Shown piece after piece: positions 6,277 through 48,354 of a stretch of 64,000 nucleotides of DNA (its first letter is position 1; every line of letters starts with the position of its first letter). The translations under genes were made by a program, and so were the position numbers. The stretch covers positions 1,116,001 to 1,180,000 of the forward strand of contig CATNEN010000008.1 of assembly GCA_950097015.1 (NCBI GenBank), written 5' to 3'. The notes below the pieces were generated by a model. The model was not told where the DNA came from, did not search any database, and saw nothing but the letters and a program-made list of their open reading frames with translations. The stretch is from Macrostomum hystrix. Taxonomy: Eukaryota; Animalia; Platyhelminthes.

Positions 6277-6718
6277 CAACAGCGCTGGATGACCCATCCA
6301 GGGCCTCCGGCCAAACTGGGTACCTCTAGCCCCGGCTGGAGGGAAAGGTGTCACCCTTTGACCTTAACAGGGTATGTGGCTTGTCCGCAATTTTCGTGCA
6401 CCTGTGCGTGATCAGGTACCTCTGGCTACGGCCCTGAGGGACAGGTGTCACCCTTTGACCTTAACAGGGTTTGCGGCCAGCCCGCAGGCCTCGGCGCCGG
6501 CTCAATGGCACCCTCCAATGTCCCAGTGTTGACCGTGCTGATGGACGCTTGGCCAGGGAGTAGTCTGGTCTCTTACGGTTCCTCCCGGTGGTCCTGGCAT
6601 CCCACCCCGGGTTGTAACTTGTCTTTTTTGGCTGCCCCCGCTCAGTTTTGGGATCGCGGCTGAGCGGGTTATTCCTGCCTGTGTCTACAGGAAGCCCCTC
6701 TCTTCATTGCAGCTTTCA

Positions 6719-8266: not shown

Positions 8267-8278
8267 ACCTCTGCCTGC

Positions 8279-11200
8279 ATGATGATCCCCGGAATATCAT
8301 GTCTGCAAGTTAACACCCAGCACTGCGTGGCAGCATCAGTCAATCTGATGCGCACGACAGAGCGCATGATGCCGGGCCTTGTACTTGTGCAGGAGCCCTG
8401 GCTATCAAAGAACAAGCCAAGCAACATTCCTGCTGGCTATGACTGCTTCTGCATGGCAGACTCTGTCCGCCCTAGATCACTGATCTATGCCGCAAAAGCC
8501 TTAAATGCGTGGATGAGACCCGATCTCTCTAACGGGGACATCTGCGTCATCCAATCTGCACACATTGTGCCTAACAAGTTGACCCTCGTGGCATCCGCCT
8601 ACCTGGCAGGCGACGCCCCCGTGGTTAGCGATACCCTCGTCGCCCTCTGTGAATTCGCCAGGGCACGAAACTTCGAGCTGCTCCTCGCGGGAGATGTAAA
8701 CTCGCATCACACCCACTGGGGTAGCTCAAAAATCAATGACTGCGGCGAAGAGCTCCTGGCCTTCGTCAGCGGCACGCCTCTAAACTTCTGCAATGTGGGC
8801 AACACGCCCACTTTCGACAATGGGCGGTGGGCTGAGGTGCTTGACGTCACCCTGGCCTCACCCGGCATCCTCCCAAGGGTGCTGGGATGGGAGGTGTGGG
8901 AGACCGAAAGCTCGCTCTCGGACCACCGTTTCATCCGTTTCAACATCGGCACCCCCGATAAGAAGCAAAAGCCTATTTGGAGGCGTAATGTCAGAAATAC
9001 CGACTGGCCCGCGTTCAGCCAAAAGCTGCATGAGGGCCTTCGGGATTCTGACCCCTCCATGGCCATGGAAACCACGCAGGACCTGGATGGAGTGGCTGCC
9101 CTGCTGGGCGGCGCCATCACAGAGGCCTACGAAATGGCTTGCCCGCTCAAAGCCTACAAAGGCAAAAAATCGGCCCCCTGGTGGAACCCCGAGCTCGGAG
9201 TCCTAAGACGCCGAGCTAAGGCTCTCCAGAGGAAGCTGAAAACCTCGCACGACCCTGATGACAAAGAGGCCTATACTCGCGCCATCCATGAGTTTAAGGG
9301 CCGGGTCAGAAGGGCAAAAGCGGACAAGTGGCGACAATACTGCGAAGGGCTTGAGGGCTCGCGGCCCACGGCCCGCGTGGTAAAGGCGCTCACCAACGAC
9401 CGCTTCTCCAAGCTCTCATCGATTAAAAAGCCGGACGGCTCGATCACTGAGCGCCCGGAGGAAACGCTCGAGCTTATGCTAGGGCATTTCTTCCCGAGTG
9501 TACCGGCGCACTTCGGCCCAGACGACCACTCGCGTGGAGGTCAGGGCCTGGCTCAGTCACTCGTTACGAATGACCGCATCGTTCGCGCGGCTAAGTCATT
9601 CAATCCTTTTAAAGCACCTGGGCCAGATGGTATATATCCGGCCTTTCTGCATGAAGCGGTTAAAAATGGCCGCTTCCTCCATCTCCTCTGCAGACTTCTA
9701 CGGGCCTGCATCGTGCTGGGCTACGTACCAGCGCGGTGGCATGAAGCCCGGGTCGTCTTCATCCCGAAGCCCGCCAAAGGCGACTATCGCTCGGTCAAGT
9801 CTTATCGCCCGATAAGCTTGACTTCCACCTGCCTCAAGCTCATGGAAAGACTGGTGCTCTGGCGCCTTCTTACTGTAGAGCTAGGGCGGGCCCCGCTCTC
9901 ACCAAACCAGCACGCCTTTCGGGCGGGCCGGTCCACGGAGAGCGCCCTCCACTGCATTGTGGAGACTCTCGAGAAGGCAGTGCTGGGCAGCGGTTTTGCC
10001 CTGGCTGTTTTCCTTGATATTGAGGGGGCCTTCGATAACGTTATTTTCGAAGCCTTTGAGAAGGCCCTGGTTTCCAGGGCCACTCACCCCCACCTCGTCC
10101 GTTGGGTCATGTACATGATCCGGAATCGCCACGTGGTGGCCCACCTCGAAGGCAGGGTGCTCTCGGCACCTGTCCTAAAAGGAGGGCCCCAAGGTGGCGT
10201 CCTCACCCCACTGCTGTGGAATCTCGTCATGGATGAGCTGCTAAAAAGCACTCGGCCTGACCCAGTCCTGAAGGTGGGATATGCCGACGATGTGACCGCC
10301 ATCTGCGCGGGCCCCTCGGCGGAAACCACCAGGGACCTCATTCAGGGCTTTATCAACAGGGCGGTGCGCTGGGCGGACCAATGCGGGCTCCGACTCTCTG
10401 AGTCCAAGACCGTTGCGGTTATGTTTACCAGCAGGCTGCGCTGGACCATTGAGCCTCTGACTCTCTATGGCAAGAATATTGCCATGGAAAAGCAGGTCCG
10501 GTGCCTTGGTATCCTGCTAGACCATAGGCTTAACTGGACCCCGCACATTACCACAAAGGCCAAGAGGGCCCTGGCCATTCTGGCGCAAGTCAGGCGAGCC
10601 GTGGGCACCACTTGGGGGCTAACCCCCAAAAACCTTTGGTGGATTTACACGGCGATCATTAGACCGTCAGTCGCTTACGCTGGCCTCATCTGGGCCAGTG
10701 CCATGAGCATCCAGAAAAACCTGGAGGCGCTTTATAGGGTGCAGGGCAGAGCCTGTCGCATGACGCTGGGCGCCCCACCCTCCACTCCCTTTGAAGGCAT
10801 GAACGCTTTCCTCAACGCTACACCCATTGACATTTTTGTTAAGGGGGAAGCGGCAAAGTCCACCCGTCGTCTCCTTGATGCGGGTGTATCCTTCCAGAAT
10901 TCGCGAGCCTTCTCGAAGCGCTCCCTTCTGCCCCACTCTGACCTCTGCCTGAAAACTCTGGGCGAGTGCGGAGGGCTCACCATCCTTTCGGACGGGGCCC
11001 CGGCCACTTTACTCCGGAGCCACAGGTACAAAGTCAGCATCTTCCCTCGTAATGAGGTAAAGGACTGCTGGGATGACCCCGCAGTCCACTGTTACACTGA
11101 CGGCTCCCTGATGAACGGTAAATCGGGATTCGGGGTGTGCGTCGCCTCGGGTGGCGAGGTCCTCTGGACCCACTCCCAACACTGTGGCAAGAGCTCAAGC

Positions 11201-11983
11201 GTTTTCCAAAACGAAATGCTCGCCATCAGTTTCTGTGCGGCTGAGCTGCGCCAGAGGCAGCTGGCTGGTCGGAGGATCTTTTTTCACTCCGACAGTCAAG
11301 CAGCCCTCAAGGCCCTCAGTCGCTGCACCTCTCGCTCCAGAACCACCTTGGACTGCAACACCCAGTTAAACGGTTTGGCGCAGTCTAACAAGGTGGAGCT
11401 GATGTGGATCCCTGGGCACGCCGGGCTCACAGGGAATGAGATGGCGGACGAGCTTGCAAAGGCTGGAGCAGCCAGCTCCCTGATGGGCCCGGGCCCGGAA
11501 TCCCCGATCCCCGCCTCCGTTGTCAACTCCAGCATCAACCACTGGATGGAGACCCAGCACCGGAGGAGGTGGTCCAGCACCCTGAACTGTCGCCAGTCCA
11601 GGGCTGCGGTGCCAACCCCCTCTAGTAACCTGCGTAAGGCCTTACTCAGGCTAAACCGCAGAGACCTGAGAGCAGTCACCATGGCCCTTTCGGGACATGG
11701 CTGCTTCACCAGACACCGCTACCTCCAAGGCCACGTGCCTGAGGAAACGTGTCCTTTCTGCTGCTCCGGCCGTGAAAACGCCGAGCATTTCATTTGCCAC
11801 TGCCCGGCCTTCACCCGGGCTAGGCTAAAACACCTCGGGCCGGCACCGACTCTTGCCGAAGCCTGCTCGCCCGAGAACATCCCTCAGCTCGCCCACTTCC
11901 TCCGGGATACCGGCCGAGCTGATTTCTTCCCAGCCTATGGCGAGGAAGATCGCGCGGCGGAACCGACCGACGGACCACCCTGA
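8279..11983 (+). CDS. LINE ORF2: APE endonuclease, reverse transcriptase, RNase H, C-terminal Cys/His knuckle (1234 aa)
   Basis: APE motifs VQEPW, GDVNSHH, LDVT, SDHRFI; RT motifs [34 protein letters not shown]; RNase H motifs [27 protein letters not shown]; CPFC...EHFICHC. Confidence 0.97.
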
Positions 11984-12302: not shown

Positions 12303-13270
12303 TCAGGTTGTGGTTGCACCACTGAATGCACTAGTGATGACATCCATGGACGCCTCGACTTCGCGCTTAAGGACAGCCATTCGATGCTGGTCCATCGTTA
12401 CACCCGCAGCTTGTGCCAGGTGTCTGTCCGCGACCTCACGCTGTATGGCAGGTGTCTGCAATCTCTGCTTCACTGCTGCCTTCAGAGCGGATCCAGCTCG
12501 TTCAGCCGGATTGAATATGGCGGCAGGTACCGGAGTCGTGTCCACCTGAAATTGTGGGGCGCATTGAGGTGAGCCCGAGCTACGTCAAAGAGGATCACGA
12601 AATCGCCTCCCACCAGCTGGTCAACTTCGGATAGAAATGCGCAGAAGTGTTCATTGCGGGCACCTCCCTCCACCAGAGCAAAGTGAACCAGGCCAATCTC
12701 CTGAGAAATCGCCAAGCAAATTCTGAGATTTCTTCCGCGTTGTCCATTTACAATGGCAACCGCCCGTTCACCCCGTGCAGCTCGGTCTTGAGTGCGTGAG
12801 GTCCACAAGTTCACTCCGAACTCGTCCATGTACAGCAGATGATTCTGGCTCCCGTCCACCAACAGCCACTCAACGTGCATCCTTCGAGCCTCCTTCGTGA
12901 CCTCTTCATTCCAATTCTGCGGCACCTGCCTGACCAGCTTGAGGGTGATTTGGCGGCCATCAAGTGCGCGGCTTATGGTCGCAAGGTCCACCTTTGGAGC
13001 ATTTGGAAACTCTAGGATGAGATGAATCTTCATCTGCTGCAGAGTCACTGTCGGATTGCCACCAATGTATGCGCAAATGCTGTCGAGCATGGCGTCGGTC
13101 AACGACTTGCGCTTGTCACCTCCTCGAGGCAGAGGTTCAGTACGACCAGTGGCTGCGAACATTCCTACGATGTTTCTTACTGTTTTTCTAGCGATGCCCA
13201 TCAGCTGACCCAGATGCTGCCAGTCATCCCCATTCTTAAAAACTTGAATCAACCGATGGCGATCCTGTGT
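12303..13270 (-). pseudogene. IS630/Tc1-mariner-type DDE transposase, frameshifted
   Basis: Motifs YMDEFG, ILFDVARAH and YLPPYS, then a frameshift near 12510 into FNPAERAGSALKAAVKQRL (LNPIE-like). No ATG start or TIRs found. Confidence 0.8.
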
Positions 13271-13674
13271 GGAAACGTTTCTGTCAAGAAGATTGGATTG
13301 AAGCTTCTAGCTCAAATAAATTGATCAATAATTTAATTAAGTTTGGTAGATACAAATGTTAAAATGAAGAACTGCATTTGTGTTAGCTTTTGATTAAAAT
13401 CGTCTTAATAATTGCATGCTAACCGAAAATATTGCCTGGTGCAACTATAATTTTAGTTATATTGTGTCAGATCGTGGCAAGCCGAGTGAATCTAGGTATA
13501 CAAAACGACACAACAATACTGAACATCATGGATTGATAGTAAAGATGACTGTATAAATCTGTCATCATTAACAATGGGACTTTCTGCAGGGTTTCACTAA
13601 AATGCTTCACGTCCTTTGCTCAGCGAGCTAGCAAGACAAAAATTTTAAGATCAACAGTTCACTCAAATATCCGG

Positions 13675-14327
13675 ACAGCTCACTACAGATCCCAGGGATC
13701 ACTCAAGACAGCTCACTCCAGATCCCAGGGATCACTCAAGACAACTCACTCCAGATCCCAGGGATCACTCAAGACAGCTCACTCCAGATCCCAGGGATCA
13801 CTCAAGACAGCTCACTCCAGATCCCAGGGATCACTCAAGACAGCTCAATCCAGATCCCAGGGATCACTCAAGACAGCTCAATCCAGATCCCAGGGATCAC
13901 TCAAGACAGCTCAATCCAGATCCCAGGGATCACTCAAGACAGCTCAATCCAGATCCCAGGGATCACTCAAGACAGCTCAATCCAGATCCCAGGGATCACT
14001 CAAGACAGCTCAATCCAGATCCCAGGGATCACTCAAGACAGCTCACTCCAGATCCCAGGGATCACTCAAGACAGCTCAATCCAGATCCCAGGGATCACTC
14101 AAGACAGCTCAATCCAGATCCCAGGGATCACTCAAGACAGCTCAATCCAGATCCCAGGGATCACTCAAGACAGCTCAATCCAGATCCCAGGGATCACTCA
14201 AGACAGCTCAATCCAGATCCCAGGGATCACTCAAGACAGCTCAATCCAGATCCCAGGGATCACTCAAGACAGCTCAATCCAGATCCCAGGGATCACTCAA
14301 GACAGCTCAATCCAGATCCCAGGGATC
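13675..14327. repeat. 33-bp minisatellite (about 20 units)
   Basis: Unit ACAGCTCAATCCAGATCCCAGGGATCACTCAAG, period 33. Confidence 0.96.
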
Positions 14328-14403
14328 CCTCTGAGCTTCGCTAAATGCAGTGTAAATTAAGAAACTACAATAGCATAGATTAGGATTACATTACCAATGA
14401 TAG

Positions 14404-16320: not shown

Positions 16321-16332
16321 GCATTAAAAACT

Positions 16333-16708
16333 TTCCTAGAAACTCTAGTTTCCTAGAAACTCTAGTTTCCTAGAAACTCTAGTTTCCTAGAAACTCTAGT
16401 TTCCTAGAAACTCTAGTTTCCTAGAAACTCTAGTTTCCTAGAAACTCTAGTTTCCTAGAAACTCTAGTTTCCTAGAAACTCTAGTTTCCTAGAAACTCTA
16501 GTTTCCTAGAAACTCTAGTTTCATAGAAACTCTAGTTTCCTAGAAACTCTAGTTTCCTAGAAACTCTAGTTTCCTAGAAACTCTAGTTTCCTAGAAACTC
16601 TAGTTTCCTAGAAACTCTAGTTTCCTAGAAACTCTAGTTTCCTAGAAACTCTAGTTTCCTAGAAACTCTAGTTTCCTAGAAACTCTTAGAAACTCTTAGA
16701 AACTCTTA
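16333..16708. repeat. 17-bp minisatellite GTTTCCTAGAAACTCTA
   Basis: About 21 tandem units; differs at 3 of 17 positions from the GTTTCCAAGAAACTATG arrays at 39609 and 47520. Confidence 0.95.
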
Positions 16709-16723
16709 GAAGATTGAGAATAT

Positions 16724-17062
16724 TCAATCCCAAACTCCCAGTTTCCGAACTGGGACGATCGAATCACAAACTGGGAGGATTGAATCCCAAACTGGCAGGA
16801 TTGAATCCCAAACTGGGATAATTGAATCCAGAACTGAAAGGATTGAATCCCAAACTGAAAGGATTGAATCCCAAACTGGCAGGATTGAATCCCAAACTGG
16901 CAGGATTGAATCCCAAACTGGCAGGATTGAATCCCAAACTGGCAGGATTGAATCCCAAACTGGCAGGATTTAATCCCAAACTGGCAGGATTGAATCCCAA
17001 ACTGGGATAATTGAATCCAGAACTGAAAGGACTGAATCCCAAACTGGCAGGATTGAATCCGA
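16724..17062. repeat. 21-bp GGATTGAATCCCAAACT-family satellite
   Basis: Tandem GGCAGGATTGAATCCCAAACT units directly upstream of the secreted-protein cassette; a short remnant lies at 44862-44935 in copy 2. Confidence 0.9.
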
Positions 17063-17550
17063 AACTAAGTCTATCTAATGCTAAACGTCAGTCAATCTCA
17101 TGCCAAATCCCCACGAGTCTCATGCTAAAGTCCACAATCACGCCACCAGTGCTTCTCTGTGATCACTTGCAGGCAACACTCGAAGCACAGCAATTGCTAA
17201 GCGATGCGCTATACAAAAATACTAGTTAAAATTTATTTTTTAGAAATACTTTTTTCTGTATCTGAGAGCGGTTTCAAAATTTAGTTGAGAATATGTATCC
17301 GTTTCGCAGCAACGTCGAATACACAGAGATAGTCCTGAAGATTTTCCATACTGATTGCAACGCAAACGCAACATCTACATTCCTGAAGGTAAAAATGTAG
17401 TTCCTGAGAATGAAAAAGTTTTCTTCCGCTCGCCTGCGCTTAACGTTAAAAATGCCAAGCCACCAAATGCTATATATTAGCGACTGAGACATTCAAATCA
17501 AACACCAATTTCTCGATTCGTCTATTGAATCTGCCAGAAATTAAATTGGA

Positions 17551-18108
17551 ATGCCCAATCAAAGCAGTTTTCTCATCTTACTGACGCTGGTCCTACTGGA
17601 AGTCTGGCTAGCTCTGCCTCTTGAAGCTTCGCAACGCGCAGTCATCAGCCAAAGCTCGCTGGTTAAGCTGAAGAATGTGCGAACTGGTTATTACATTATG
17701 GTGATTGATGATCCTCACAATCGATTTGAACGTAGCTTCTTCTGCCGCTCAGATCATTATTTGGAATTTACAACCGATCGTCCAGCCTCATTCCTATTCG
17801 AAGACGCCGGGGGTGGCGCTAAGAAGATTCGCATACATTTTAACGGAAGTTCTAGTGCTAAACACTATGTAGAATGCAACTGGAACGAAGAAATCTTCGA
17901 TACAAAAGAAGACGCTGATCCTCTTCAGGAGTGGTTCATCGAGAATCAGAATAAATCGCTGGAAATCAAAGATGGCGACATTGTAACCATCAAGAATGCG
18001 GAATACACCACAGCCTACATTGCTTTCTCGACGAGGCGATCACTTCATGGCAATATTTTTTGCCTGAACCAGGTTTCAGATAAATGGAAAGTCATTATGA
18101 TCAAGTAA
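17551..18108 (+). CDS. Secreted beta-trefoil-like protein, paralog 1 (185 aa, intronless)
   Basis: Intact ATG-to-TAA ORF in AT-rich flanks; hydrophobic N-terminus FLILLTLVLLEVWLALPLEA; three strand repeats (LVKLKNVRTGYYI / KIRIH...EWFI / GDIVTIKN...AYI...KWKV). TATA-like TATATA near 17471 and AATAAA at 18126. The open frame is conserved in paralog 2. The fold is inferred. Confidence 0.82.
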   Translation: MPNQSSFLILLTLVLLEVWLALPLEASQRAVISQSSLVKLKNVRTGYYIMVIDDPHNRFERSFFCRSDHYLEFTTDRPASFLFEDAGGGAKKIRIHFNGSSSAKHYVECNWNEEIFDTKEDADPLQEWFIENQNKSLEIKDGDIVTIKNAEYTTAYIAFSTRRSLHGNIFCLNQVSDKWKVIMIK

Positions 18109-19961
18109 GACCCGGAACTCTTAGAAATAAACTGCCAGAATATCATTGTTTTAGCTGAAATATCTTTTTATTTTCTTCATACGACTAAAATGAGAAAGAC
18201 AAACGACTCAATTTTTAGCTGTGAGAAAATAATTAAATAAATTGTCACAATAATGTCGGAATCAAAATCTAACTACGAAAATTTAGCGCGCATTTTAGAT
18301 ACAATAGCTCAGTGTGAGTTGTTAGTGGTGTAGAAACTATGCAATAGAAAGTTAACGATCACAAATTTGTTCAAATAGATAAAATCTATTTTTAACTAAA
18401 CATTTAAATTTCGTGAATGTGTCCTTGGAAATTTCTTCCGATATTCTCTAAAGATGTCCTTGAGGATTGAATCCCAAACTGAAAAGATTTAATACCAAAC
18501 TGGGAGGATTGAATCCAAACTGAAAGGATTGAATCCAAACTGAAAGGATTAAATACCAAACTGGGAGGATTGAATCCAAACTGGGAGGATTGAATCCCAA
18601 ACTGGGAGGATTGAATCCAAACTGAAAAGATTAAATGCCAAACTGGGAGGAGTGAATCCAAACTGAAAGGATTAAATGCCAAACTGGGAGGATTAAATCC
18701 AAACTGAAAGGATTAAATACCAAACTGGGAGGATTGAATCCAAACTGGGAGGATTGAATCCAAACTGGGAGGATTGAATCCAAACTGGGAGGATTGAATC
18801 CAAACTGGGAGGATTGAATACCAAACTGCGAGGATTGAATCCAAACTGGGAGGATTGAATACCAAACTGGGAGGATTGAATACCAAACTGGGAGGATTGA
18901 ATCCAAACTGGGAGGATTGAATCCAAACTGGGAGGATTGAATCCAAACTGGGAGGATTGAATCCAAACTGGGAGGATTGAATCCAAACTGAAAGGATTAA
19001 ATACCAAACTGGGAGGATTGAATCCAAACTGAAAGGATTAAATACCAAACTGGGAGGATTGAATCCAAACTGAAAAGATTAAATGCCAAACTGGGAGGAT
19101 TGAATCCAAACTGAAAAGATTAAATACCAAACTGGGAGGATTGAATCCAAACTGAAAGGATTAAATACCAAACTGGGAGGATTAAATACCAAACTGGGAG
19201 GATTGAATCCAAACAGAAAGGATTAAATACCAAACTGAAAGGATTAAATCCAAACTGAAAGGATTAAATACCAAACTGAAAGGATTAAATACCAAACTGG
19301 GAGGATTGAATCCAAACTGGGAGGATTGAATCCAAACTGAAAGGATTGAATCCAAACTGGGAGGATTGAATCCAAACTGGGAGGATTGAATCCAAACTGG
19401 GAGGATTGAATCCAAACTGGGAGGATTGAATCCAAACTGGGAGGATTGAATCCAAACTGGGAGGATTGAATCCAAACTGGGAGGATTGAATCCAAACTGG
19501 GAGGATTGAATCCAAACTGGGAGTATTGAATCCAAACTGGGAGGATTGAATCCAAACTGGGAGGATTGAATCCAAACTGGGAGGATTGAATCCAAACTGG
19601 GAGGATTGAATCCAAACTGGGAGGATTGAATCCAAACTAGGAGGATTGAATCCAAACTGGGAGGATTGAATCCAAACTGGGAGGATTGAATCCAAACTGG
19701 GAGGATTGAATCCAAACTGGGAGGATTGAATCCCAAACTGGGAGGATTGAATCCAAACTGGGAGGATTGAATGAGAAACTGGGATGATTGAATCCGAAAC
19801 TGAAAGGATTAAATCCCAAACTGAAAGGATTAAATCCCAAACTGAAAGGATTAAATCCCAAACTGAAAGGATTAAATCCCAAACTGAAAGGATTGAATGC
19901 CAAAGTGAAAGGATTAAATCCCAAACAAGAATATTGAATGCACAACGGGATGATTGAATCC

Positions 19962-20334
19962 TGTAACGTAATCGTAATGAATCAGAGAACAAAGGCGGTG
20001 GTTCTTTTTGGTTGTTTGTCGATCGTATGACCGAGAGCTTGAGGAAGGTTGGAGATTGCACTCCTTGGCTACTTATATTTATAGTGTCCAACGGAATATT
20101 CTAGAATGTTTTATTGCATTATAACAAAGTTAATATTCGGAAATAACTATAGTACGAAATATGTGACGATAAAGTATTATCTGAGTCTTATAATTAACTG
20201 CAAGCTGATTAATAGAAAAATAAAATTTACTTTTGAGAACTTCTAGAAATTCTGAGAAAATTATACAAGGATTTGACTTAGAATATTCTCGAAGATTACC
20301 TAATTTAGACAATACGGTACACTGCAATGTTACA
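19962..20334 (-). mobile_element. Solo LTR (373 bp) of the Ty3/Gypsy element
   Basis: TGTAAC...GTTACA termini, ATCC on both sides, near-identical to the LTRs at 26523 and 31232. Confidence 0.94.
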
Positions 20335-22535
20335 ATCCCAAACTGGAAGAATTGAATCCCAAACGGGATGATTGAATCCCAAACTGAAAGGATTGAATCC
20401 CAAACTGGGAGGATTGAATCCAAAACTGAAAGGATTGAACCCCAAACTGAAAGTAATAAATCCCTAACGGGAGGATTGAATCCCAAACAGAAAGGATTGA
20501 ATCCAAACTGGGAGGATTGAATCCAAACTGGGAGGATTGAATCCAAACTGGGAGGATTGAATCCAAACTGGGAGGATTGAATCCAAACTGGGAGGATTGA
20601 ATCCAAACTGAAAGGATTAAATACCAAACTGGGAGGATTAAATCCAAACTGAAAGGATTAAATACCAAACTGGGAGGATTGAATCCAAACTGGGAGGATT
20701 GAATCCAAACTGGGAGGATTGAATCCAAACTGGGAGGATTGAATCCAAACTGGGAGGATTGAATCCAAACTGGGAGGATTGAATCCAAACTGGGAGGATT
20801 GAATCCAAACTGGGAGGATTGAATCCAAACTGGGAGGATTGAATCCAAACTGGGAGGATTGAATACCAAACTGGGAGGATTGAATCCAAACTGAAAGGAT
20901 TAAATACCAAACTGGGAGGATTGAATCCAAACTGAATGGATTAAATACCAAACTGGGAGGATTGAATGAGAAACGGAGATGATTGAATCCGAAACTGAAA
21001 GGATTAAATACCAAACTGGGAGGATTGAATCCAAACTGGGAGGATTGAATCCCAAACTGGGATGATTGAATCCGAAACTGAAAGGATTAAATCCCAAACT
21101 TAAAGGATTGAATCCCAAACTGGGAGGATTGAATCCAAACTGAAAAGATTAAATGCCAAACTGGGAGGATTGAATCCAAACTGAAAGGATTAAATACCAA
21201 ACTGGGAGGATTGAATCCAAACTGAAAGGATTAAATACCAAACTGGGAGGATTGAATCCAAACTGAAAGGATTAAATACCAAACTGGGAGGATTGAATCC
21301 AAACTGAAAAGATTAAATGCCAAACTGGGAGGATTGAATCCAAACTGAAAGGATTAAATACCAAACTGGGAGGATTAAATACCAAACTGGGAGGATTGAA
21401 TCCAAACAGAAAGGATTAAATACCAAACTGAAAGGATTAAATCCAAACTGAAAGGATTAAATACCAAACTGAAAGGATTAAATACCAAACTGGGAGGATT
21501 GAATCCAAACTGGGAGGATTGAATCCAAACTGAAAGGATTGAATCCAAACTGGGAGGATTGAATCCAAACTGGGAGGATTGAATCCAAACTGGGAGGATT
21601 GAATCCAAACTGGGAGGATTGAATCCAAACTGGGAGGATTGAATCCAAACTGGGAGGATTGAATCCAAACTGGGAGGATTGAATCCAAACTGGGAGGATT
21701 GAATCCAAACTGGGAGGATTGAATCCAAACTGGGAGGATTGAATCCAAACTGGGAGGATTGAATCCAAACTGGGAGGATTGAATACCAAACTGGGAGGAT
21801 TGAATCCAAACTGGGAGGATTGAATCCAAACTGGGAGGATTGAATCCAAACTGGGAGGATTGAATCCAAACTGGGAGGATTGAATCCAAACTGGGAGGAT
21901 TGAATCCAAACTGGGAGTATTGAATCCAAACTGGGAGGATTGAATCCAAACTGGGAGGATTGAATCCAAACTGGGAGGATTGAATCCAAACTGGGAGGAT
22001 TGAATCCAAACTGGGAGGATTGAATCCAAACTAGGAGGATTGAATCCAAACTGGGAGGATTGAATCCAAACTGGGAGGATTGAATCCAAACTGGGAGGAT
22101 TGAATCCAAACTGGGAGGATTGAATCCCAAACTGGGAGGATTGAATCCAAACTGGGAGGATTGAATGAGAAACTGGGAGGATTGAATCCAAACTGAAAGG
22201 ATTAAATACCAAACTGGGAGGATTAAATCCAAACTGGGAGGATTGAATCCAAACTGGGAGGATTGAATCCAAACTGGGAGGATTGAATCCAAACTGGGAG
22301 GATTGAATCCAAACTGGGAGGATTGAATCCAAACTGGGAGGATTGAATCCAAACTGGGAGGATTGAATCCCAAACTGGGAGGATTGAATCCAAACTGGGA
22401 GGATTGAATGAGAAACTGGGATGATTGAATCCGAAACTGAAAGGATTAAATCCCAAACTGAAAGGATTGAATCCCAAAGTGAAAGGATTAAATCCCAAAC
22501 AAGAATATTGAATGCACAACAGGATGATTGAATCC

Positions 22536-22908
22536 TGTAACGTAATCGTAATGAATCAGAGAACAAAGGCGGTGGTTCTTTTTGGTTGTTTGTCGATCGT
22601 ATGACCGAGAGCTTGAGGAAGGTTGGAGATTGCACTCCTTGGCTACTTATATTTATAGTGTCCAACGGAATATTCTAGAATGTTTTATTGCATTATAACA
22701 AAGTTAATATTCGGAAATAACTATAGTACGAAATATGTGACGATAAAGTATTATCTGAGTCTTATAATTAACTGCAAGCTGATTAATAGAAAAATAAAAT
22801 TTACTTTTGAGAACTTCTAGAAATTCTGAGAAAATTATACAAGGATTTGACTTAGAATATTCTCGAAGATTACCTAATTTAGACAATACGGTACACTGCA
22901 ATGTTACA
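22536..22908 (-). mobile_element. Solo LTR (373 bp) of the Ty3/Gypsy element
   Basis: Same sequence, ATCC TSD and flanks as 19962-20334. Confidence 0.94.
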
Positions 22909-25900
22909 ATCCCAAACTGGAAGAATTGAATCCCAAACGGGATGATTGAATCCCAAACTGAAAGGATTGAATCCCAAACTGGGAGGATTGAATCCAAAAC
23001 TGAAAGGATTGAACCCCAAACTGAAAGTAATAAATCCCTAACGGGAGGATTGAATCCCAAACAGAAAGGATTGAATCCAAACTGGAAGGATTGAATCCAA
23101 ACTGGGAGGATTGAATCCAAACTGGGAGGATTGAATCCAAACTGGGAGGATTGAATCCAAACTGGGAGGATTGAATCCAAACTGGGAGGATTGAATCCAA
23201 ACTGGGAGGATTGAATCCAAACTGGGAGGATTGAATCCAAACTGGGAGGATTGAATCCAAACTGGGAGGATTGAATCCAAACTGGGAGGATTGAATACCA
23301 AACTGGGAGGATTGAATCCAAACTGAAAGGATTAAATACCAAACTGGGAGGATTGAATCCAAACTGGGAGGATTGAATACCAAACTGGGAGGATTGAATC
23401 CAAACTGAATGGATTAAATACCAAACTGGGAGGATTGAATCCAAACTGAAAGGATTAAATACCAAACTGGGAGGATTGAATGAGAAACGGAGATGATTGA
23501 ATCCGAAACTGAAAGGATTAAATACCAAACTGGGAGGATTGAATCCAAACTGGGAGGATTGAATCCCAAACTGGGATGATTGAATCCGAAACTGAAAGGA
23601 TTAAATCCCAAACTTAAAGGATTGAATCCCAAACTGGGAGGATTGAATCCAAACTGAAAAGATTAAATGCCAAACTGGGAGGATTGAATCCAAACTGAAA
23701 GGATTAAATACCAAACTGGGAGGATTGAATCCAAACTGAAAGGATTAAATACCAAACTGGGAGGATTGAATCCAAACTGAAAGGATTAAATACCAAACTG
23801 GGAGGATTGAATCCAAACTGAAATGATTAAATGCCAAACTGGGAGGATTGAATCCAAACTGAAAGGATTAAATACCAAACTGGGAGGATTAAATACCAAA
23901 CTGGGAGGATTGAATCCAAACAGAAAGGATTAAATACCAAACTGAAAGGATTAAATCCAAACTGAAAGGATTAAATACCAAACTGAAAGGATTAAATACC
24001 AAACTGGGAGGATTGAATCCAAACTGGGAGGATTGAATCCAAACTGAAAGGATTGAATCCAAACTGGGAGGATTGAATCCAAACTGGGAGGATTGAATCC
24101 AAACTGGGAGGATTGAATCCAAACTGGGAGGATTGAATCCAAACTGGGAGGATTGAATCCAAACTGGGATGATTGAATCCAAACTGGGAGGATTGAATCC
24201 AAACTGGGAGGATTGAATCCAAACTGGGAGGATTGAATCCAAACTGGGAGGATTGAATCCAAACTGGGAGGATTGAATACCAAACTGGGAGGATTGAATC
24301 CAAACTGAAAGGATTAAATACCAAACTGGGAGGATTGAATCCAAACTGAATGGATTAAATACCAAACTGGGAGGATTGAATCCAAACTGGGAGGATTGAA
24401 TCCCAAACTGGGATGATTGAATCCGAAACTGAAAGGATTAAATCCCAAACTGGGAGGATTGAATCCAAACTGGGAGGATTGAATCCCAAACTGGGATGAT
24501 TGAATCCGAAACTGAAAGGATTAAATCCCAAACTTAAAGGATTGAATCCCAAACTGGGAGGATTGAATCCAAACTGAAAAGATTAAATGCCAAACTGGGA
24601 GGATTGAATCCAAACTGAAAGGATTAAATACCAAACTGGGAGGATTGAATCCAAACTGAAAGGATTAAATACCAAACTGGGAGGATTGAATCCAAACTGA
24701 AAGGATTAAATACCAAACTGGGAGGATTGAATCCAAACTGAAATGATTAAATGCCAAACTGGGAGGATTGAATCCAAACTGAAAGGATTAAATACCAAAC
24801 TGGGAGGATTAAATACCAAACTGGGAGGATTGAATCCAAACAGAAAGGATTAAATACCAAACTGAAAGGATTAAATCCAAACTGAAAGGATTAAATACCA
24901 AACTGAAAGGATTAAATACCAAACTGGGAGGATTGAATCCAAACTGGGAGGATTGAATCCAAACTGAAAGGATTGAATCCAAACTGGGAGGATTGAATCC
25001 AAACTGGGAGGATTGAATCCAAACTGGGAGGATTGAATCCAAACTGGGAGGATTGAATCCAAACTGGGAGGATTGAATCCAAACTGGGATGATTAAATCC
25101 AAACTGGGAGGATTGAATCCAAACTGGGAGGATTGAATCCAAACTGGGAGGATTGAATCCAAACTGGGAGGATTGAATCCAAACTGGGAGGATTGAATCC
25201 AAACTGGGAGGATTGAATACCAAACTGGGAGGATTGAATCCAAACTGGGAGGATTGAATCCAAACTGGGAGGATTGAATCCAAACTGGGAGGATTGAATC
25301 CAAACTGGGAGTATTGAATCCAAACTGGGAGGATTGAATCCAAACTGGGAGGATTGAATCCAAACTGGGAGGATTGAATCCAAACTGGGAGGATTGAATC
25401 CAAACTGGGAGGATTGAATCCAAACTGGGAGGATTGAATCCAAACTGGGAGGATTGAATCCAAACTGGGAGGATTGAATCCAAACTGGGAGGATTGAATC
25501 CAAACTGGGAGGAATGAATCCAAACTGGGAGGATTGAATCCAAACTGGGATGATTGAATCCGAAACTGAAAGGATTAAATACCAAACTGGGAGGATTGAA
25601 TCCAAACTGGGAGGATTGAATCCCAAACTGGGATGATTGAATCCGAAACTGAAAGGATTAAATCCCAAACTTAAAGGATTGAATCCCAAACTGGGAGGAT
25701 TGAATCCAAACTGAAAAGATTAAATGCCAAACTGGGAGGATTGAATCCAAACTGAAAGGATTAAATACCAAACTGGGAGGATTGAATCCAAACTGAAAGG
25801 ATTAAATACCAAACTGGGAGGATTGAATCCAAACTGAAAAGATTAAATGCCAAACTGGGAGGATTGAATCCAAACTGAAAGGATTAAATACCAAACTGGG

Positions 25901-26999
25901 AGGATTAAATACCAAACTGGGAGGATTGAATCCAAACAGAAAGGATTAAATACCAAACTGAAAGGATTAAATCCAAACTGAAAGGATTAAATACCAAACT
26001 GAAAGGATTAAATACCAAACTGGGAGGATTGAATCCAAACTGGGAGGATTGAATCCAAACTGGGAGGATTGAATCCAAACTGGGAGGATTGAATCCAAAC
26101 TGGGAGGATTGAATCCAAACTGGGATGATTGAATCCAAACTGGGAGGATTGAATCCAAACTGGGAGGATTGAATCCAAACTGAAAGGATTAAATACCAAA
26201 CTGGGAGGATTAAATCCAAACTGGGAGGATTGAATCCAAACTGGGAGGATTGAATCCAAACTGGGAGGATTGAATCCAAACTGGGAGGATTGAATCCAAA
26301 CTGGGAGGATTGAATCCAAACTGGGAGGATTGAATCCAAACTGGGAGGATTGAATCCCAAACTGGGAGGATTGAATCCAAACTGGGAGGATTGAATGAGA
26401 AACTGGGATGATTGAATCCGAAACTGAAAGGATTAAATCCCAAACTGAAAGGATTGAATGCCAAAGTGAAAGGATTAAATCCCAAACAAGAATATTGAAT
26501 GCACAACGGGATGATTGAATCCTGTAACGTAATCGTAATGAATCAGAGAACAAAGGCGGTGGTTCTTTTTGGTTGTTTGTCGATCGTATGACCGAGAGCT
26601 TGAGGAAGGTTGGAGATTGCACTGCTTGGCTACTTATATTTATAGTGTCCAACGGAATATTCTAGAATGTTTTATTGCATTATAACAAAGTTAATATTCG
26701 GAAATAACTATAGTACGAAATATGTGACGATAAAGTATTATCTGAGTCTTATAATTAACTGCAAGCTGATTAATAGAAATATAAAATTTACTTTTGAGAA
26801 CTTCTAGAAATTCTGAGAAAATTATACAAGGATTTGACTTAGAATATTCTCGAAGATTACCTAATTTAGACAATAGGGTACACTGCAATGTTACAATAGT
26901 CCCCCCTGCGGGAGACGGAGTCTCCTAAAATAATGCGTTGGCGGGGCTTAACGTACCGTATGATAGGGTAGAGTTATGAAAAAAATTAAATATTCGGCA

Positions 27000-29900
27000 T
27001 TAAAAATATAGGTAATCATTGTTGTTTTTGAAGCGCACGTTCCGGCCACTCCTGGTAGTCCTTGGTGCTCTCGCCGCCACCGGAGTCGTCCGTGGTGGCA
27101 ATGCGGTGTCGCTCTGCGCCCGATCCTTGGACGGTTGAGCTTGGTCGGGTGGCTTTGGACAAGGTGTGGCAGCGGCGGTACGGAGCGGCTTCAGGCGGTC
27201 GATTGACACTGCCTCCTGCTGACCTGGGTGGAGCTCCAGAATGAAGAACTTTGCCGTCCGACGTATGACCGGGTAGGGCCCCTGGTAGGGTGCTTCCAAG
27301 GGTTTGCGGACGCGATCCACTCGCACCCAGACCTTTTCCGCCGTCGAGAGGTCTGCTGGGATGTATCGCTTGGCCGTCGAAGGCGAAGGTCGCGCGCCGT
27401 CGTCGGTGATATCGTCCATTCGAAGCCGTAGATCATTGGAGTCGACGTCCTCGGTGGCCAGGACTCTCGGCAGCATCGGATGCTCTCCTGTGAGACGCGT
27501 GAAAGGGCTGACTCCATCCTCGTCCGGGTTGATGTGCATGGCGAGTAGTGCGAGGGGCAGGTTGTCGAGCCACGCCTGTCCATGAGCCTTCAGGATGTGC
27601 TTGAGCGTCCGGTGAGCTCGCTCGATCTTCCCGTTGGTCTGCGGATGGTACGCTGTCGTCCGAAGCCGGTAGAAGCCGACGCTGGTAGCCAGGATGTTGA
27701 AGAGGTCCGCTTCGAACTGCGCGCCGCGGTCGGTGACGACGTAGAGGGGTACGCCGAATCGCGAGATCCAGGATGCTAGGAAAGCGGACGCGACACTCTG
27801 AGCCGTGATGGACTCGATCGGCGTTGCTTCGATCCAGCTCGTGCCTCGGTCTATCATGGTGAGCAGGTACCGTGGAGTTAGGCCGCATGAGACGTCGTGC
27901 TTTCGCTCGGGAACTGGCAACGGGCCGACAATGTCGATGTGGACGGTCTCAAACCGGTTTGAAGGCAGATCGAACGCTGAGGTGCCGGATATGGTGTGGC
28001 GGCTGACCTTGTTGCGCTGGCAGGTCTGGCAGGCTCGGCAGTAGTCTTTGATATCCGCGCGCATGTTGGGCCAGAAGTAGCGCGACGTGATGAGGCGAGC
28101 TGTCTTGCGGAAACCGAAGTGTCCGATGTCATGAAAGTGTTGCAGCGTCGCTCGTCGCATCGACTCCGGTATGACCGGGCGCGGGTAGCTCGAGGAGGTC
28201 TCACAAAGAATCGTCCGCTGTCCGTTCACCGGGAAGGGTCGGCAGCCCTCGGATGGCTGCAGCTGCTCCTTTGCCTGACGCTCGGCGATGGCCGGGATGT
28301 CGATGGGTGTTGTCGGTAGGACGCTGTTGACCGGGGTGGTGCCCTCGTCAAGCCGGGATAGCGCATCAGCTACGATGTTGTCGGAGCCGCGGATATAGGT
28401 GATATCCACGACGTACTCGGCGATGACGCTCAGGTACCGTTGATTCCGGTCGGAGGTGCCGGTGTTGCTGCTGCAGAACGCCTGGGCGAGGGGTTTGTGA
28501 TCCGTGAAGACCGTTACCTTGCGACCCTCGATCAGGCTCCGGAAGTGCAGAACAGCGAGGTACACTGCGAGAAGTTCCCTGTCGAAAGCTGAGTACTTCT
28601 GTTGTGCTGCCGACAGTTTCTTGCTGAACAAGCCAATGGGCGTCGTGTTAGCGTCGGTCGATTGATGCAGAGCTGCGCCGACGCTGCTGGACGAAGCATC
28701 CGTGACGAGACTGTATGAGTCGCACTTGGGGTCCGGGTGCTGCAGCAGAAGTCTCTCCGCTAAGGTTGCCTTGAGCTTGTCAAAGGCCTGTTGATGAGCT
28801 GGGTCCCATCTGTAGGATCTCGGAGACTGCAGTGTTGTAGTGACGAGATCCTGCAGAGGTGCTGCGATTTCGGCGAACTGCGGGACAAAGCGTCGGTAGA
28901 ACCCGATGACGCCGAGGAATTGACGCAGGGCGTGGGGGTCCTTGGGAGCCGGCCACTGGCGGATGGTGTCGACCTTGGATGCGAGAGGCCGTATGCCCTC
29001 GGCTGATACCTGATGTCCCAGGAAGGTCACCTCGCGCTGCATGAAGGCGCACTTGTTGAGCTGCGCTTTGAGTCCGTGCTGGGCCAGACGTTGCAGGACT
29101 GCTTCCATGTGCTGCAGGTGTTCCTCCTCGCTGGGGGAGGCAACCAGCAGGTCGTCGATGTAGGCGACCGCGAACGGAAGTCCGCGCAGAACGCTGTCAA
29201 TGAAACGCTGGAATGTTTGTGCTGCGTTCCTCAGGCCGAATGGCATCCGGATCCATTCGTAGAGACCAAACGGTGTAATGATGGCGGTCTTCGGGATGTC
29301 CTCCTCGGCGATCGGAATCTGGTGGTACGTTATAGGAGGTCCAGTTTCGAGAAGACCCTCGCGCCGTGAAGACTTCTTGTGAAGCACTGAATGTGCGGAA
29401 TCGGATAGTTGTCCGGCTTGGTGAGCTTGTTGAGTTGCCGGTAGTCGCCACAGGGTCGCCATTTGCCGTTGGGGACGCCGTTGTCCTTCTTGGGGACCAT
29501 GTGTAGTGGTGACGCCCAGTTGCTGGCGGAAGGCCGAAGGTATCCGGCGTCGATCAGCTGCTGGAATTCGTCCTTGGCGATCGCCAACTTCTCGGGATGT
29601 AGCTGTCGAGCTTTGGCGTGAACTGGCGGGTGCTCGTAGGTGATGATATGGTGCTTCGTGTCGTGCCCGACCTCCTCGGCTTTGGGCAAGCGGCCGCCTT
29701 CGACGTACGAGAATGTGTCCTTAAAACGGTCGATGAGCTGCTGGACTCGCGCGTCACAGTGCTCCGGGTACGCTAAGGAGATGGCAAAGGTGTCGAGCTG
29801 CAAGCTGGCGACAGGCAGCGTCTGCGTGTGCAGGTTCGTTTCTGGATCCACCAGCTGTCGGGCCTTGCAGTCCACGAGCAATCCGAACTGAGACAGAAAG

Positions 29901-44842: not shown

Positions 44843-45417
44843 ACTAGATCGCAATTAGATCCCAAAACCGAAAGGATTGAATCAGAAACTGGGACGATTG
44901 AATCCAAAACTAGGATGATTGAATCCGAAACTGAGTCTATCTAATGCTAAACGTCAGTCAATCTCATGCCAAATCCCCACGAGTCTCATGCTAAAGTCCA
45001 CAATCACGCCACCAGTGCTTCTCTGTGATCACTTGCAGGCAACACTCGAAGCACAGCAATTGCTAAGCGATGCGCTATACAAAAAATACTAGTTAAAATT
45101 TATTTTTTAGAAATATTTTTTTCTGTATCTCAGAGCGGTTTCAAAATTTAGTTGAGAATATGTATCCGTTTCGCAGCAACGTCGAATACACAGAGATAGT
45201 CCTGAAGATTTTCCATATTGATTGCAACGCAAACGCAACATCTACATTCCTGAAGGTAAAAATGTAGTTCCTGAGAATGAAAAAGTTTTCTTCTGCTCGT
45301 CTGCGCTTAACGTTAAAAATGCCAAGCCACCAAATGCTATATATTAGCGACTGAGACATTCAAATCAAACACCAATTTCTCGATTCGTTAATTGAAACTG
45401 CCAGAAATTGAATTAGA

Positions 45418-45978: not shown

Positions 45979-46274
45979 GACCCGGAACTCTTAGAAATAA
46001 ACTGCCTAGTCAGTTGTTCGAATCGTTGTGCAGAATATCATTCTTTTAGCTGAAATCTCTTTTTATTTTCTTCATACGACTAAAATGAGAAAGACAAACG
46101 ACTCAATCTTTAGCTGTGAGAAAATAATTAAATAAATTGTCACAATAATGTCGGAATCAAAATCTAACTACGAAAATTTAGCGCGCACAATAGATACAAT
46201 AGCTCAGTGTGAGGTGTTAGTGGTGTAGAAACTATGCGATGAAAAGTTCACAAATGATGTGCCGTCGCATGCAG

Positions 46275-48098: not shown

Positions 48099-48354
48099 CG
48101 CCCCAGCTGCACCCATGCATAGCTACTATCGCTGGTCTTCCTAAGCCCGCCCTAACTGGAAAGTTTTCCTTGTGAAACCCTGCACAGGTAAAGCAGCAGA
48201 CGGAGCTGTTGCTTCAGCGGCAATCGTCGATGCGGACGCAGCGGACGGTCGTCAGAGAGCGAATAAGCGAAGATGCCAGCAGCCCACCGTCAGCTTCTCC
48301 TCGGACAGCGGCTTCCCCTGCGAGAGGCTGCTCATCGCCAATGCGGCGGTGCGC

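Follow-up and report, generated by a model that had tools for sequence, protein, structure and literature searches.

Conotoxin precursors and snake-venom PLA2 genes join a constant secretion leader to a mature part with accelerated replacement. The share of selection and of mutation or conversion in this pattern is debated for these genes, and the question of conversion versus selection has a long history in conotoxins, venom genes and gall-midge effectors. Lysenin-type toxins, known mainly from earthworms, are toxins of the aerolysin type in which the C-terminal domain is the part that binds membrane headgroups. The lysenin taken as reference here is that of Eisenia fetida, among the aerolysin-family pore-forming toxins (PDB 3ZXD, 3ZX7, 5EC5, 5GAQ). 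It is a coelomic-fluid defence toxin whose phosphocholine pocket is formed by Lys185, Ser227, Gln229, Tyr233 and Tyr282 (PMC3526787). In the small secreted salivary gland protein (SSGP) genes of the Hessian fly, non-coding flanks and the signal-peptide region have diverged less than the mature part, a pattern called 'unusual conservation' (PMC2955719).

Two genes, named A and B, lie in a window of Macrostomum hystrix DNA, i.e., the whole stretch of 64,000 nucleotides that was analysed. They are intronless members of a lineage-specific family in this free-living flatworm, and a search of the lysenin and flatworm literature returned no description of it. The reading preferred here, with a probability of roughly 0.7, is that of a transcribed family numbering 16 copies or more, in which a predicted signal peptide precedes a trefoil of about 158 aa homologous to the lysenin C-terminal domain, with a homogenised promoter and leader, diversified loops and cassettes set among minisatellites.

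The duplicated cassettes and their family

Homology between the cassettes carrying A and B (Table 1) stops at minisatellites on both sides and decays within the upstream array (11 of 57 positions differ). The hand counts of a first-pass annotation were all reproduced. Its estimate of about 97% identity over about 490 bp upstream corresponds to the three distal differences of Table 1 plus 8 in 234 positions over the promoter and 5' UTR (17317-17550), and the single leader difference (T12K) and the identical last nine codons were found again, the next difference past T12K being the third base of codon 46. In the core, A and B agree at 59 of 130 aligned residues (about 58 of 131 by hand), silent differences affect 6 of 58 degenerate codons with a conserved residue (about 6 of about 64 by hand), and the open frames, the single codon indel and the three kept cysteines are confirmed. 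Core differences between A and B are distributed 46/41/28 over the three codon positions. A TATA-like box (TATATATTA), read directly from the sequence, occupies 17471-17479.

Table 1. Positions of the cassettes, genes and gene segments in the window
Feature	Positions	Strand	Remarks
Upstream minisatellite bounding cassette A	16332-17066	+	20-21-nt unit (GGATTGAATCCCAAACTGGCA-like)
Cassette A, duplicated unit	17010-18356	+	counterpart 44876-46251
Distal upstream flank, cassette A	17067-17316	+	A vs B 3/250 differences
Proximal promoter, family-conserved	17317-17520	+	family mean pairwise difference 0.085-0.116
5' UTR	17521-17550	+	transcript 5' ends ~17521-17545
Gene A CDS	17551-18108	+	intronless, 185 aa; stand-alone lysenin-C-terminal-like beta-trefoil, predicted secreted
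Predicted signal peptide, residues 1-27	17551-17631	+	MPNQSS + hydrophobic run + PLEAS; by inspection
Constant leader (predicted signal peptide, linker, first trefoil strand)	17551-17687	+	A vs B 1/137 (T12K)
Variable core	17688-18078	+	A vs B 115/391 differences (29%)
Hypervariable loop 1, residues 50-67, strand 2-strand 3	17698-17751	+	nine sites with P(omega>1) >0.9
Hypervariable loop 2, residues 96-104	17836-17862	+	six selected sites
Hypervariable loops 3 and 4, residues 159-167 and 172-176	18025-18078	+	seven selected sites
Constant C-terminal strand (DKWKVIMIK), stop and short 3' UTR	18079-18150	+	A vs B 1/72, plus 25-nt indel
Downstream flank, cassette A	18151-18356	+	A vs B 10/206 differences
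Large downstream array, same 20-21-nt minisatellite	18371-26522	+	27-35 motif hits per 2 kb
Cassette B, paralogous ~1.35-kb unit	44876-46251	+	87% identity across 1376 nt
Gene B CDS	45418-45978	+	186 aa; slowly evolving sister of A
B-specific 25-nt 3' UTR segment	46007-46031	+	25 gap columns in A

The family has 24 matches in the M. hystrix genome assembly (220,453,370 bases in 42 contigs; PMC10468722), including 16 distinct intact ORFs, a lower bound that puts it at 16 intact copies at least. Across these copies, the promoter and leader have a mean pairwise difference of 0.06-0.11 versus up to 0.52 in the core; the leader is the least variable stretch (0.057-0.082) and the distal upstream flank is poorly kept (0.14-0.49). 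Nearly all cassettes of the family are bordered by the 21-nt minisatellite, always in the orientation of the gene, and these arrays probably promote cassette duplication by unequal exchange. The window also holds a pair of 183-aa ORFs at 52639 and 54009, a near-identical tandem duplicate. These ORFs were considered as family members and excluded, since they match no Pfam model and do not resemble the family.

Evidence of transcription comes from assembled contigs of four runs, presumed to be RNA, from which expression levels are not derivable. In the region of cassette A, the contigs cover only 17521-18136. Run X5 contains an exact contig of A, 449 nt long (17658-18106), and run X6 its counterpart with a single difference. 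The 25-mer of B is carried exactly by a contig of X3 and occurs only in B among the sequences compared, while loose contig ends match B and the copies L005, L004/6 and L013/14 exactly. A paralogue contig begins at 17521, adjoining an Illumina adapter, other contigs begin at 17545, and the 3' ends lie at 18106-18136. Adapter and spliced-leader sequences are joined to contig ends; the Macrostomum 35-nt spliced leader (sequence from PMC8629364) has 23 exact copies in the genome versus 0 for the reversed control. No contig of the four runs extends over the promoter (17317-17520) or the downstream flank (18151-18356). Since an AATAAA stands at 18126-18131 in the 3' UTR of A and contigs reach no farther than about 18136-18150, the larger part of the conserved 3' flank appears to be untranscribed. 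The view of A and B as a real gene family, for which transcription had been proposed as a check, is thus upheld by the copy number and by contigs that include the core of A exactly, the runs being presumed RNA.

Fold and relationship to lysenin

The beta-trefoil fold, first called from three repeated strand motifs, agrees with the AF2 model of A, which has 12 beta-strands (pLDDT 78.8, pTM 0.74), and with the structures that this model retrieves. Foldseek against the PDB gave 94 matches with E no higher than 0.001; the best 50 of these 94 are lysenin, N-terminal domains of RyR/IP3R, the designed trefoils Symfoil and ThreeFoil and an SDF2-like protein, and the top 16 are all lysenin (E 2.7e-8 to 1.5e-7; TM 0.66 by query). 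A structure search of the Atlas gave ricin-type and MIR trefoils with TM of 0.59-0.72.

The proposed ricin-B/MIR-like affiliation did not hold. Pfam yielded chance-level matches only, and even with a cutoff as loose as E 10 the models PF00652, PF14200 and PF02815 match neither A nor B. The Q-x-W motif, which is (Q-x-W)3 in the ricin-B type, is found once only, as the invariant Q126 and W128, and the likeness to MIR is structural only (E 3e-5 to 4e-4). The best match is the C-terminal domain of lysenin: the family profile matches lysenin residues 194-296 (E 1.2e-6), and a search of 1.84 billion representatives left one credible match only, a full-length lysenin homologue (P0001), which matches the family in the genome reciprocally at E 1.8e-6 to 7e-3. 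The second match of this search (P0002), an F-box/WD40 protein, was treated as spurious, and a separate search for homologous proteins found none. The family is homologous to the lysenin C-terminal domain and belongs to neither the ricin-B nor the MIR group; it does have relatives, by profile, Foldseek and reciprocal match.

One full-length lysenin homologue is present in the genome (L027:988-1938, contig 11). In A, the trefoil occupies residues 28-185 of the 185-aa ORF, and each gene of the family would consist of a predicted signal peptide fused directly to a trefoil of about 158 aa. The predicted signal peptide runs straight into the trefoil, which leaves no room in A for the N-terminal pore-forming module, some 160 residues long in lysenin; as for an upstream exon, the four runs contain no contig joint before the ATG and no contig beyond 17521. 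Lacking this module, the family does not count among pore formers of the lysenin kind. Viewed by eye, the leader is made up of MPNQSS, a hydrophobic run of 10-18 residues, with Glu17 within the run in A and B, and PL(A/E)AS. It looks like a signal peptide by this inspection, and AF2 places a helix at residues 4-27 of A.

Probable exchange and selection in the cassettes

The constancy of the leader, already seen in the first-pass annotation, is real, but purifying selection on the protein does not account for it. Leader diversity is flat over codon positions (0.074/0.081/0.085) and its omega is about 1.6, at a rate five-fold lower than in the core, so that the leader appears to be kept at the DNA level. 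Silent divergence between A and B reaches 0.159 in the core, compared with 0.030 over the flanks and 0.012 over the distal upstream part; core values of 0.16-0.25 stand against 0.01-0.05 in flanks (p 0.002). The trees of flank and core disagree, too, with AU p values of 1.4e-3 and 5e-10 for groups picked once the trees were known. Recombination or gene conversion among copies would thus keep the promoter and leader near-identical, as suggested by the flat codon-position diversity, the five-fold slower silent and replacement change and the conflicting trees. With core silent divergence about five times that of the flanks, part of the contrast between the two probably comes from this homogenisation. 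An older divergence with converted flanks, named beforehand as the finding that would count against selection, is therefore partly true, and the contrast overstates selection.

Diversifying selection on the core is supported by counting and by codon models. For A and B, the Nei-Gojobori method gives dN 0.41, dS 0.25 and omega 1.64. Over the family, M0 yields an omega of 1.7-1.9, significantly different from 1 (p <=1.5e-4) with four codon-frequency models, and diversity by codon position is 0.262/0.227/0.205. M2a, which assigns 37% of sites an omega of 4.2, is preferred to M1a by a 2dlnL of 84.5, whereas two null simulations gave 1.5 and 0.0; these models come from a purpose-written script run on one tree, and recombination, evident here, as well as multi-nucleotide mutations can inflate site-model tests. 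Sites scored as selected make up 17 of 64 outside strands versus 6 of 59 in strands, and they cluster in four loop regions of the predicted trefoil, on which diversifying selection would act. Loop 1 reaches a family difference of 0.45-0.52 and has a low pLDDT (57-64). Loops 3 and 4 border Cys171, which aligns with the Cys following Tyr282 of lysenin.

The excess is carried by one of the two genes. The core tree joins A and B with a support of 100/98 and gives them branch lengths of 0.374 and 0.075, respectively. An apparent equidistance of A's core from all copies was an artefact of a gap-rich nucleotide alignment, the codon alignment and ML tree placing A with B. Once polarised, core changes amount to 49 replacement and 4 silent in A versus 12 and 5 in B. 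The omega of the A branch is 4.4, different from 1 at p 0.001, while that of the B branch is about 0.5-0.6, the branch model giving 0.54. A burst of amino-acid replacement would thus have taken place in A since its split from B. The first-pass annotation had ascribed diversifying selection to the pair; counting, branch and site models all give omega above 1, but the excess is found on A only.

Could the whole contrast come from old paralogues, with a core drifting at omega of about 1 and conversion of the promoter, leader and 3' end, and no adaptation at all? The silent divergences and conflicting trees given above fit such a history, as do the omega values of 0.6-1.1 (Nei-Gojobori) of many older pairs and the marginal pairwise excess of A and B taken alone (98 replacements among 115 changes, versus 79.5% expected). 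It is nevertheless considered improbable in view of the omega of the A branch, the M0 values and the M2a result, to which young pairs at omega 2-7 and the larger variation of codon positions 1 and 2 than of position 3 can be added.

Targeted hypermutation of the core between sharp boundaries, raising silent and replacement change together, would dispense with flank conversion. The boundaries are indeed sharp (17687/17688 and about 18079), silent divergence is 5-13 times as high in the core as in the flanks, and 32 of the 71 core codons replaced between A and B differ at two or three bases; the independent pair L004/L005 is alike, with flanks 98-99% identical and a core at 92%. A mutator acting on A should raise silent and replacement changes alike, so the asymmetry in replacements alone (four-fold, versus symmetric silent changes of 4 in A and 5 in B) counts against this mechanism. 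The tree conflicts also indicate flank exchange, no template repeat or reverse transcriptase is linked to the cassettes, and the nearby retroelements are ordinary transposons, which makes hypermutation very unlikely.

A might also be a decaying duplicate without function, its replacement excess resulting from lost constraint. Its branch is five times as long as that of B and it departs from motifs conserved in the family, e.g., NAEYTT in place of NMYWTN. However, A retains an open frame, several runs (presumed RNA) contain contigs that match its core exactly, its omega is significantly above 1, and it keeps the 52 family-invariant residues, although by definition since these columns include A. 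Decay is accordingly given hardly any credence. Diversifying selection on the core together with exchange of the flanks remains the preferred reading, and since silent and replacement changes can be polarised, flank conversion is separable from core selection.

Putative role and comparison with known systems

The family probably constitutes a secreted repertoire of candidate binding modules, lectin-like or binding lipid headgroups, with varied specificities, and a putative role in defence or recognition is the most likely one. Rather than in defence or recognition, these proteins might act in reproduction, as seminal-fluid or prostate-gland proteins under sexual conflict in a hermaphrodite that inseminates hypodermically. 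They are small, predicted to be secreted, lineage-specific and present in many copies, and reproduction-related genes are reported to evolve fast in Macrostomum, especially in hypodermically mating species (PMC8662610). On the other side, the only homologue with a known function, lysenin, is a defence toxin of the coelomic fluid (PMC3526787), and the reproductive role is held to be rather unlikely, if worth keeping in mind.

A more far-reaching proposal, regarded as speculative and unlikely, is a germline-encoded recognition repertoire derived from the targeting domain of a toxin, in which loop-specific trefoils would mark microbes, prey or partner cells and the cassettes would generate and co-regulate variants. 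If this is true, the trefoils might also redirect or inhibit the one full-length lysenin-like pore former, which is encoded on contig 11, and the minisatellite-bounded cassettes with their homogenised promoter and leader would be the machinery that makes and co-regulates the variants.

Under the preferred reading of a diversified secreted family, a flatworm possesses one full-length lysenin homologue and, besides it, 16 or more stand-alone copies of the targeting domain, the latter probably under diversifying selection. Macrostomum species are amenable to RNAi, in situ hybridisation and transgenesis. The family thus offers a tractable case of how the binding module of a toxin may turn into an independent and rapidly diversifying secreted family, and it bears on how a promoter and leader stay constant while putative binding loops change.

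With lysenin, the family shares YA..C/S, Q-x-W, GD-VT-.N.Y, the Cys before the last strand and DKW, and its linker and first strand read RAVISQSSLVKLKNVRTG against RQIILGKTEIRIKHAERKEY in lysenin. The phosphocholine-pocket residues are mostly lost in the HMM alignment, where only the position of Tyr233 is kept, as Tyr or Phe. Ser227 corresponds to Gly in the family (Asn in A), Gln229 to a variable residue and Tyr282 to Ala (Phe in A), and Lys185 aligns within hypervariable loop 1, the most variable loop of the family. Unlike lysenin, the family is multi-copy and hypervariable, belongs to a flatworm and not to an annelid, and does not include the pore-forming module. With ricin-B and MIR domains, it has the 12-strand trefoil in common, whereas Q-x-W is kept in only one of the three repeats.

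As in the Hessian fly SSGP genes, a clustered multigene family has flanks and a leader more conserved than the mature region. The proteins and organisms are nevertheless unrelated (a plant-galling insect versus a free-living flatworm), and the salivary effector role is inapplicable; a reading of A and B as gall-midge SSGP effectors was dropped, the host being Macrostomum hystrix. Unlike the SSGP genes, the family has minisatellite-bounded cassettes and a flank exchange backed by tree conflict. From conotoxins and snake-venom PLA2, it differs in fold and biology, its variable part, about 130 residues long, being a folded and lectin-like domain that varies in its loops only.

Two copies of a minisatellite-bounded cassette

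Genes A and B each encode a putative secreted lysenin-C-terminal-like beta-trefoil, and both ORFs lie where the first-pass annotation had placed them. In the self-comparison of the window, their duplication is limited to a unit of about 1.35 kb, and past either end of this unit A/B homology is replaced by minisatellite. Between promoter and leader (the start of the CDS, with the predicted signal peptide) on one side and the short 3' UTR on the other stands a variable core, in which A and B share 59 of 130 aligned residues, silent differences occur at 6 of the 58 degenerate codons with an unchanged residue, and 32 of the 71 codons with a replacement carry two or three base changes. The core differences number 46, 41 and 28 at codon positions 1, 2 and 3, and the Nei-Gojobori method gives a dN of 0.41, a dS of 0.25 and an omega (dN/dS) of 1.64. 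The counts previously made by hand for this pair were all recovered to within one or two units.

Coordinates of the features in the window and of related loci elsewhere in the assembly
Feature	Position	Remarks
Gene A	17551-18108	185 aa
Gene B	45418-45978	186 aa
Duplicated unit	17010-18356 and 44876-46251	
Distal upstream	17067-17316	A/B substitutions 3/250
Promoter and 5' UTR	17317-17550	A/B substitutions 8/234
Leader	17551-17687	A/B substitutions 1/137
Core	17688-18078	A/B substitutions 115/391
Last strand, stop and 3' UTR	18079-18150	A/B substitutions 1/72, plus a 25-nt indel
Downstream flank	18151-18356	A/B substitutions 10/206
TATA-like box	17471-17479	
AATAAA	18126-18131	
LINE (endonuclease, RT, RNase H)	8279-11983	region given also as 6707-11983
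DDE_3 transposase fragment	12482-13252	
Gypsy-like pol	27000-29462	
Pao/BEL element	32808-36869	with DUF1759 gag-like ORF to 39275
Four more satellites	1-2200, 13674-14331, 48199-49200, 60678-62200	periods about 44, 66, 13, 28 nt
Tandem ORFs	52639-53190 and 54009-54560	183 aa, differing at one residue
L022:1012-1695	contig 34, about 7.600 Mb	divergent family member, 228 aa
L027:988-1938	contig 11, 6601481-6602431	single intronless gene, 316 aa
L034	contig 2, 6500456-6500800	152-aa open frame

Protein A, used as query in a six-frame search of the whole assembly (220,453,370 bases, 42 contigs), found 24 matches. Among them are 16 different intact ORFs (177-228 aa) with the N-terminus MPNQSS, a copy number that is a lower bound. 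Contig 8 carries A and B, contig 34 a trio at 0.31-0.34 Mb and a cluster at 7.51-7.60 Mb, and broken copies also occur in the genome. The same 20-21-nt minisatellite (GGATTGAATCCCAAACTGGCA-like) lies within 1.5 kb of nearly every family cassette, always on the strand of the gene and never reversed. The divergent member at L022 retains the constant leader, but its trefoil is interrupted by two insertions and its C-terminus is extended by a segment containing Cys and Gly.

A and B are surrounded by transposons and several satellites, and the tandem-repeat content of the window is unusually high. The tandem 183-aa ORFs, which have no Pfam match and do not resemble the trefoil family, probably belong to a repeated element.

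Fold and relationship to lysenin

The A/B protein has no Pfam match, and a word-indexed protein search gave none either. The AlphaFold2 model, based on a 15-sequence alignment (mean pLDDT 78.8, pTM 0.74), displays a helix at 4-27 and twelve strands and, together with the Foldseek trefoil matches, bears out the beta-trefoil fold first proposed from strand motifs. The best 16 Foldseek matches in the PDB are lysenin throughout (E 2.7e-8 to 1.5e-7, TM about 0.66 by query, about 20% identity), followed by RyR/IP3R N-terminal trefoils, designed Symfoil trefoils and an SDF2-like MIR protein. Ricin-type and MIR trefoils are also the structure matches in the ESM-Atlas, and the feature search is concordant. 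The ricin-B/MIR-like label initially given to the pair holds as a structural likeness only: Pfam gives it no match, and lysenin is best by structure and by sequence.

A family profile matches lysenin residues 194-296 (E 1.2e-6). A search of 1.84 billion representative proteins gave two matches, one being a full-length lysenin homologue (E 2.7e-30 against lysenin) and the other an F-box/WD40 protein taken as a chance match. Reciprocally, a genome search with this homologue finds family members (E 1.8e-6 to 7e-3). These profile and reciprocal matches speak for true homology between the family and lysenin.

The Macrostomum hystrix genome also encodes a predicted secreted full-length lysenin homologue (L027), whose match spans lysenin residues 81-294 (E 1e-22) and therefore includes part of the pore-forming module. 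The mature N-terminus of the family, RAVISQSSLVKLKNVRTG, aligns, in both lysenin and L027, with the linker and the first strand of the trefoil. The family would therefore consist of a signal peptide fused straight to the C-terminal domain of lysenin and would lack the pore-forming module. L027 is likely the source lineage of this trefoil-only family. A weak lysenin-trefoil-like match (L034, E 9e-5) stands outside the MPNQ family.

In lysenin, the trefoil is the domain first docking the toxin to phosphocholine headgroups, through a pocket of Lys185, Ser227, Gln229, Tyr233 and Tyr282, and its removal lowers affinity about 100-fold (PMC3526787). In the family, Tyr233 alone is retained, as Tyr or Phe; Ser227 is replaced by Gly and Tyr282 by Ala, Gln229 is variable, and the position of Lys185 falls within the most variable loop. 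L027 retains Ser227, Tyr233 and a basic residue where lysenin has Lys185.

Selection on the core and proposed homogenisation of its flanks

The replacement excess reported in the variable core is upheld across the family. A Goldman-Yang likelihood script written for this analysis, applied to 128 core codon columns and the ML core tree, gives a one-ratio omega of 1.72 under F3x4 and 1.83-1.91 under other frequency models (against 1, p 1.5e-4 to 4e-6). M2a is preferred to M1a (2dlnL 84.5, p 4e-19) in a site test that recombination and multi-nucleotide mutation can inflate, with an omega of 4.2 at 37% of sites, and two M1a simulations gave 2dlnL values of 1.5 and 0.0. Sites with a posterior >0.9 concentrate at residues 50-67, 96-104, 159-167 and 172-176, representing 17 of 64 non-strand versus 6 of 59 strand positions. 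Independently of the tree, young family pairs have an omega of 2-7, and core diversity is lowest at the third codon position (0.262, 0.227 and 0.205 for positions 1, 2 and 3).

Polarised with outgroups, the A branch carries 49 replacement and 4 silent changes and the B branch 12 and 5. Replacements are asymmetric (binomial p 2e-6), silent changes are symmetric, and the replacement share on A is above the neutral 79.5% (p 0.01). The branch omega is 4.4 for A (against 1, p 0.001) and 0.54 for B.

Selection is not the whole story, as it explains only part of the contrast between flanks and core. Silent differences at residue-conserved codons of the A/B core amount to 6 per 37.7 synonymous sites (0.159), versus 0.030 in the non-coding flanks (Fisher p 0.002) and 0.012 in the distal upstream (p 2e-4), a stretch unconstrained family-wide. 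Hence the cores either predate the flanks or have mutated more. A mutator acting only within the core is a weaker explanation, since silent changes are equal on both branches and replacements differ four-fold. The rival named in the first-pass annotation, an old divergence with converted flanks, gains from this silent contrast and from the conflict between the upstream-plus-leader tree and the core tree, and has omega above 1 against it. A flank-tree clade is rejected by the core data (AU p 5e-10) and a core-tree clade by the flank data (AU p 1.4e-3), both values being weakened by the choice of groups after seeing the trees. The same design is found in an independent pair, loci L004 and L005, with cores 92% and flanks 98-99% identical. 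Because leader diversity is flat across codon positions (0.074, 0.081 and 0.085) and the leader, changing at a rate five times below that of the core, has an omega of about 1.6, leader conservation indicates homogenisation acting on DNA and not protein-level constraint.

In the proposed mechanism, recombination or gene conversion would hold promoter and leader in concert among copies, probably aided by the flanking minisatellites, diversifying selection on the four loop regions would prevent homogenisation of the core, and copy A would have undergone an adaptive burst.

Transcription and putative role

Portions of the gene were found in four public runs guessed to be RNA, as assembled contigs that indicate presence, not level or tissue. 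These are confined to 17521-18136, with none on the 450 nt upstream or 200 nt downstream, flanks that are genomically two-copy. Run X5 includes a 449-nt contig exactly equal to A (17658-18106), found again in X6 with one difference; X1 has contigs of 153 nt (no difference to A) and 308 nt (one difference), and X3 a 282-nt contig with 257 nt on the stretch, identical to A. Two features were counted as signs of RNA: a paralogue contig passes from Illumina adapter directly to position 17521, and in an X5 contig the final 23 nt of the Macrostomum spliced leader are joined to a family member. The contig span, the TATA-like box and the AATAAA together define an mRNA of about 0.63 kb that has no intron. 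At the leader/core boundary, loose contig ends are exact matches to other copies (the 3' UTR segment unique to B, L005, L004/L006 and L013/L014), which indicates that several family members are expressed. Transcription, on which the initial reading depended, is thus seen in exact contigs of the A core and in those of several members.

The X5 spliced-leader junction lies at an internal AG in the signal-peptide coding region (17610-17620), where the leader's own ATG would fall out of frame; it may represent cryptic trans-splicing or an isoform without signal peptide. At 18136, the X3 contig passes from A-identical sequence into a 25-nt segment that is B-only in the assembly, either a strain indel difference or a chimera across identical 3' ends. 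The 35-nt spliced leader (sequence from PMC8629364) has 23 exact copies in the assembly, and the reversed control sequence has 0 matches. Some copies stand in tandem on contigs 15, 17 and 42, one per about 11.6 kb, and these arrays are presumably SL RNA gene repeats.

Given the lack of a pore module, the replaced pocket residues and the hypervariable loops, the family trefoil would most likely serve for binding, with specificities that vary. Defence or recognition would rank first among its putative roles, other secretions third and reproduction second, fast-evolving reproductive genes being documented for Macrostomum (PMC8662610). A literature search for lysenin and flatworms found no account of such a family.

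The combination of a constant leader and a hypervariable mature part is itself already known, as it likewise occurs in venom genes. Gall-midge SSGPs share it with the flatworm family (PMC2955719). What is unusual in the flatworm family is its origin from a toxin targeting domain and its minisatellite-bounded cassettes.
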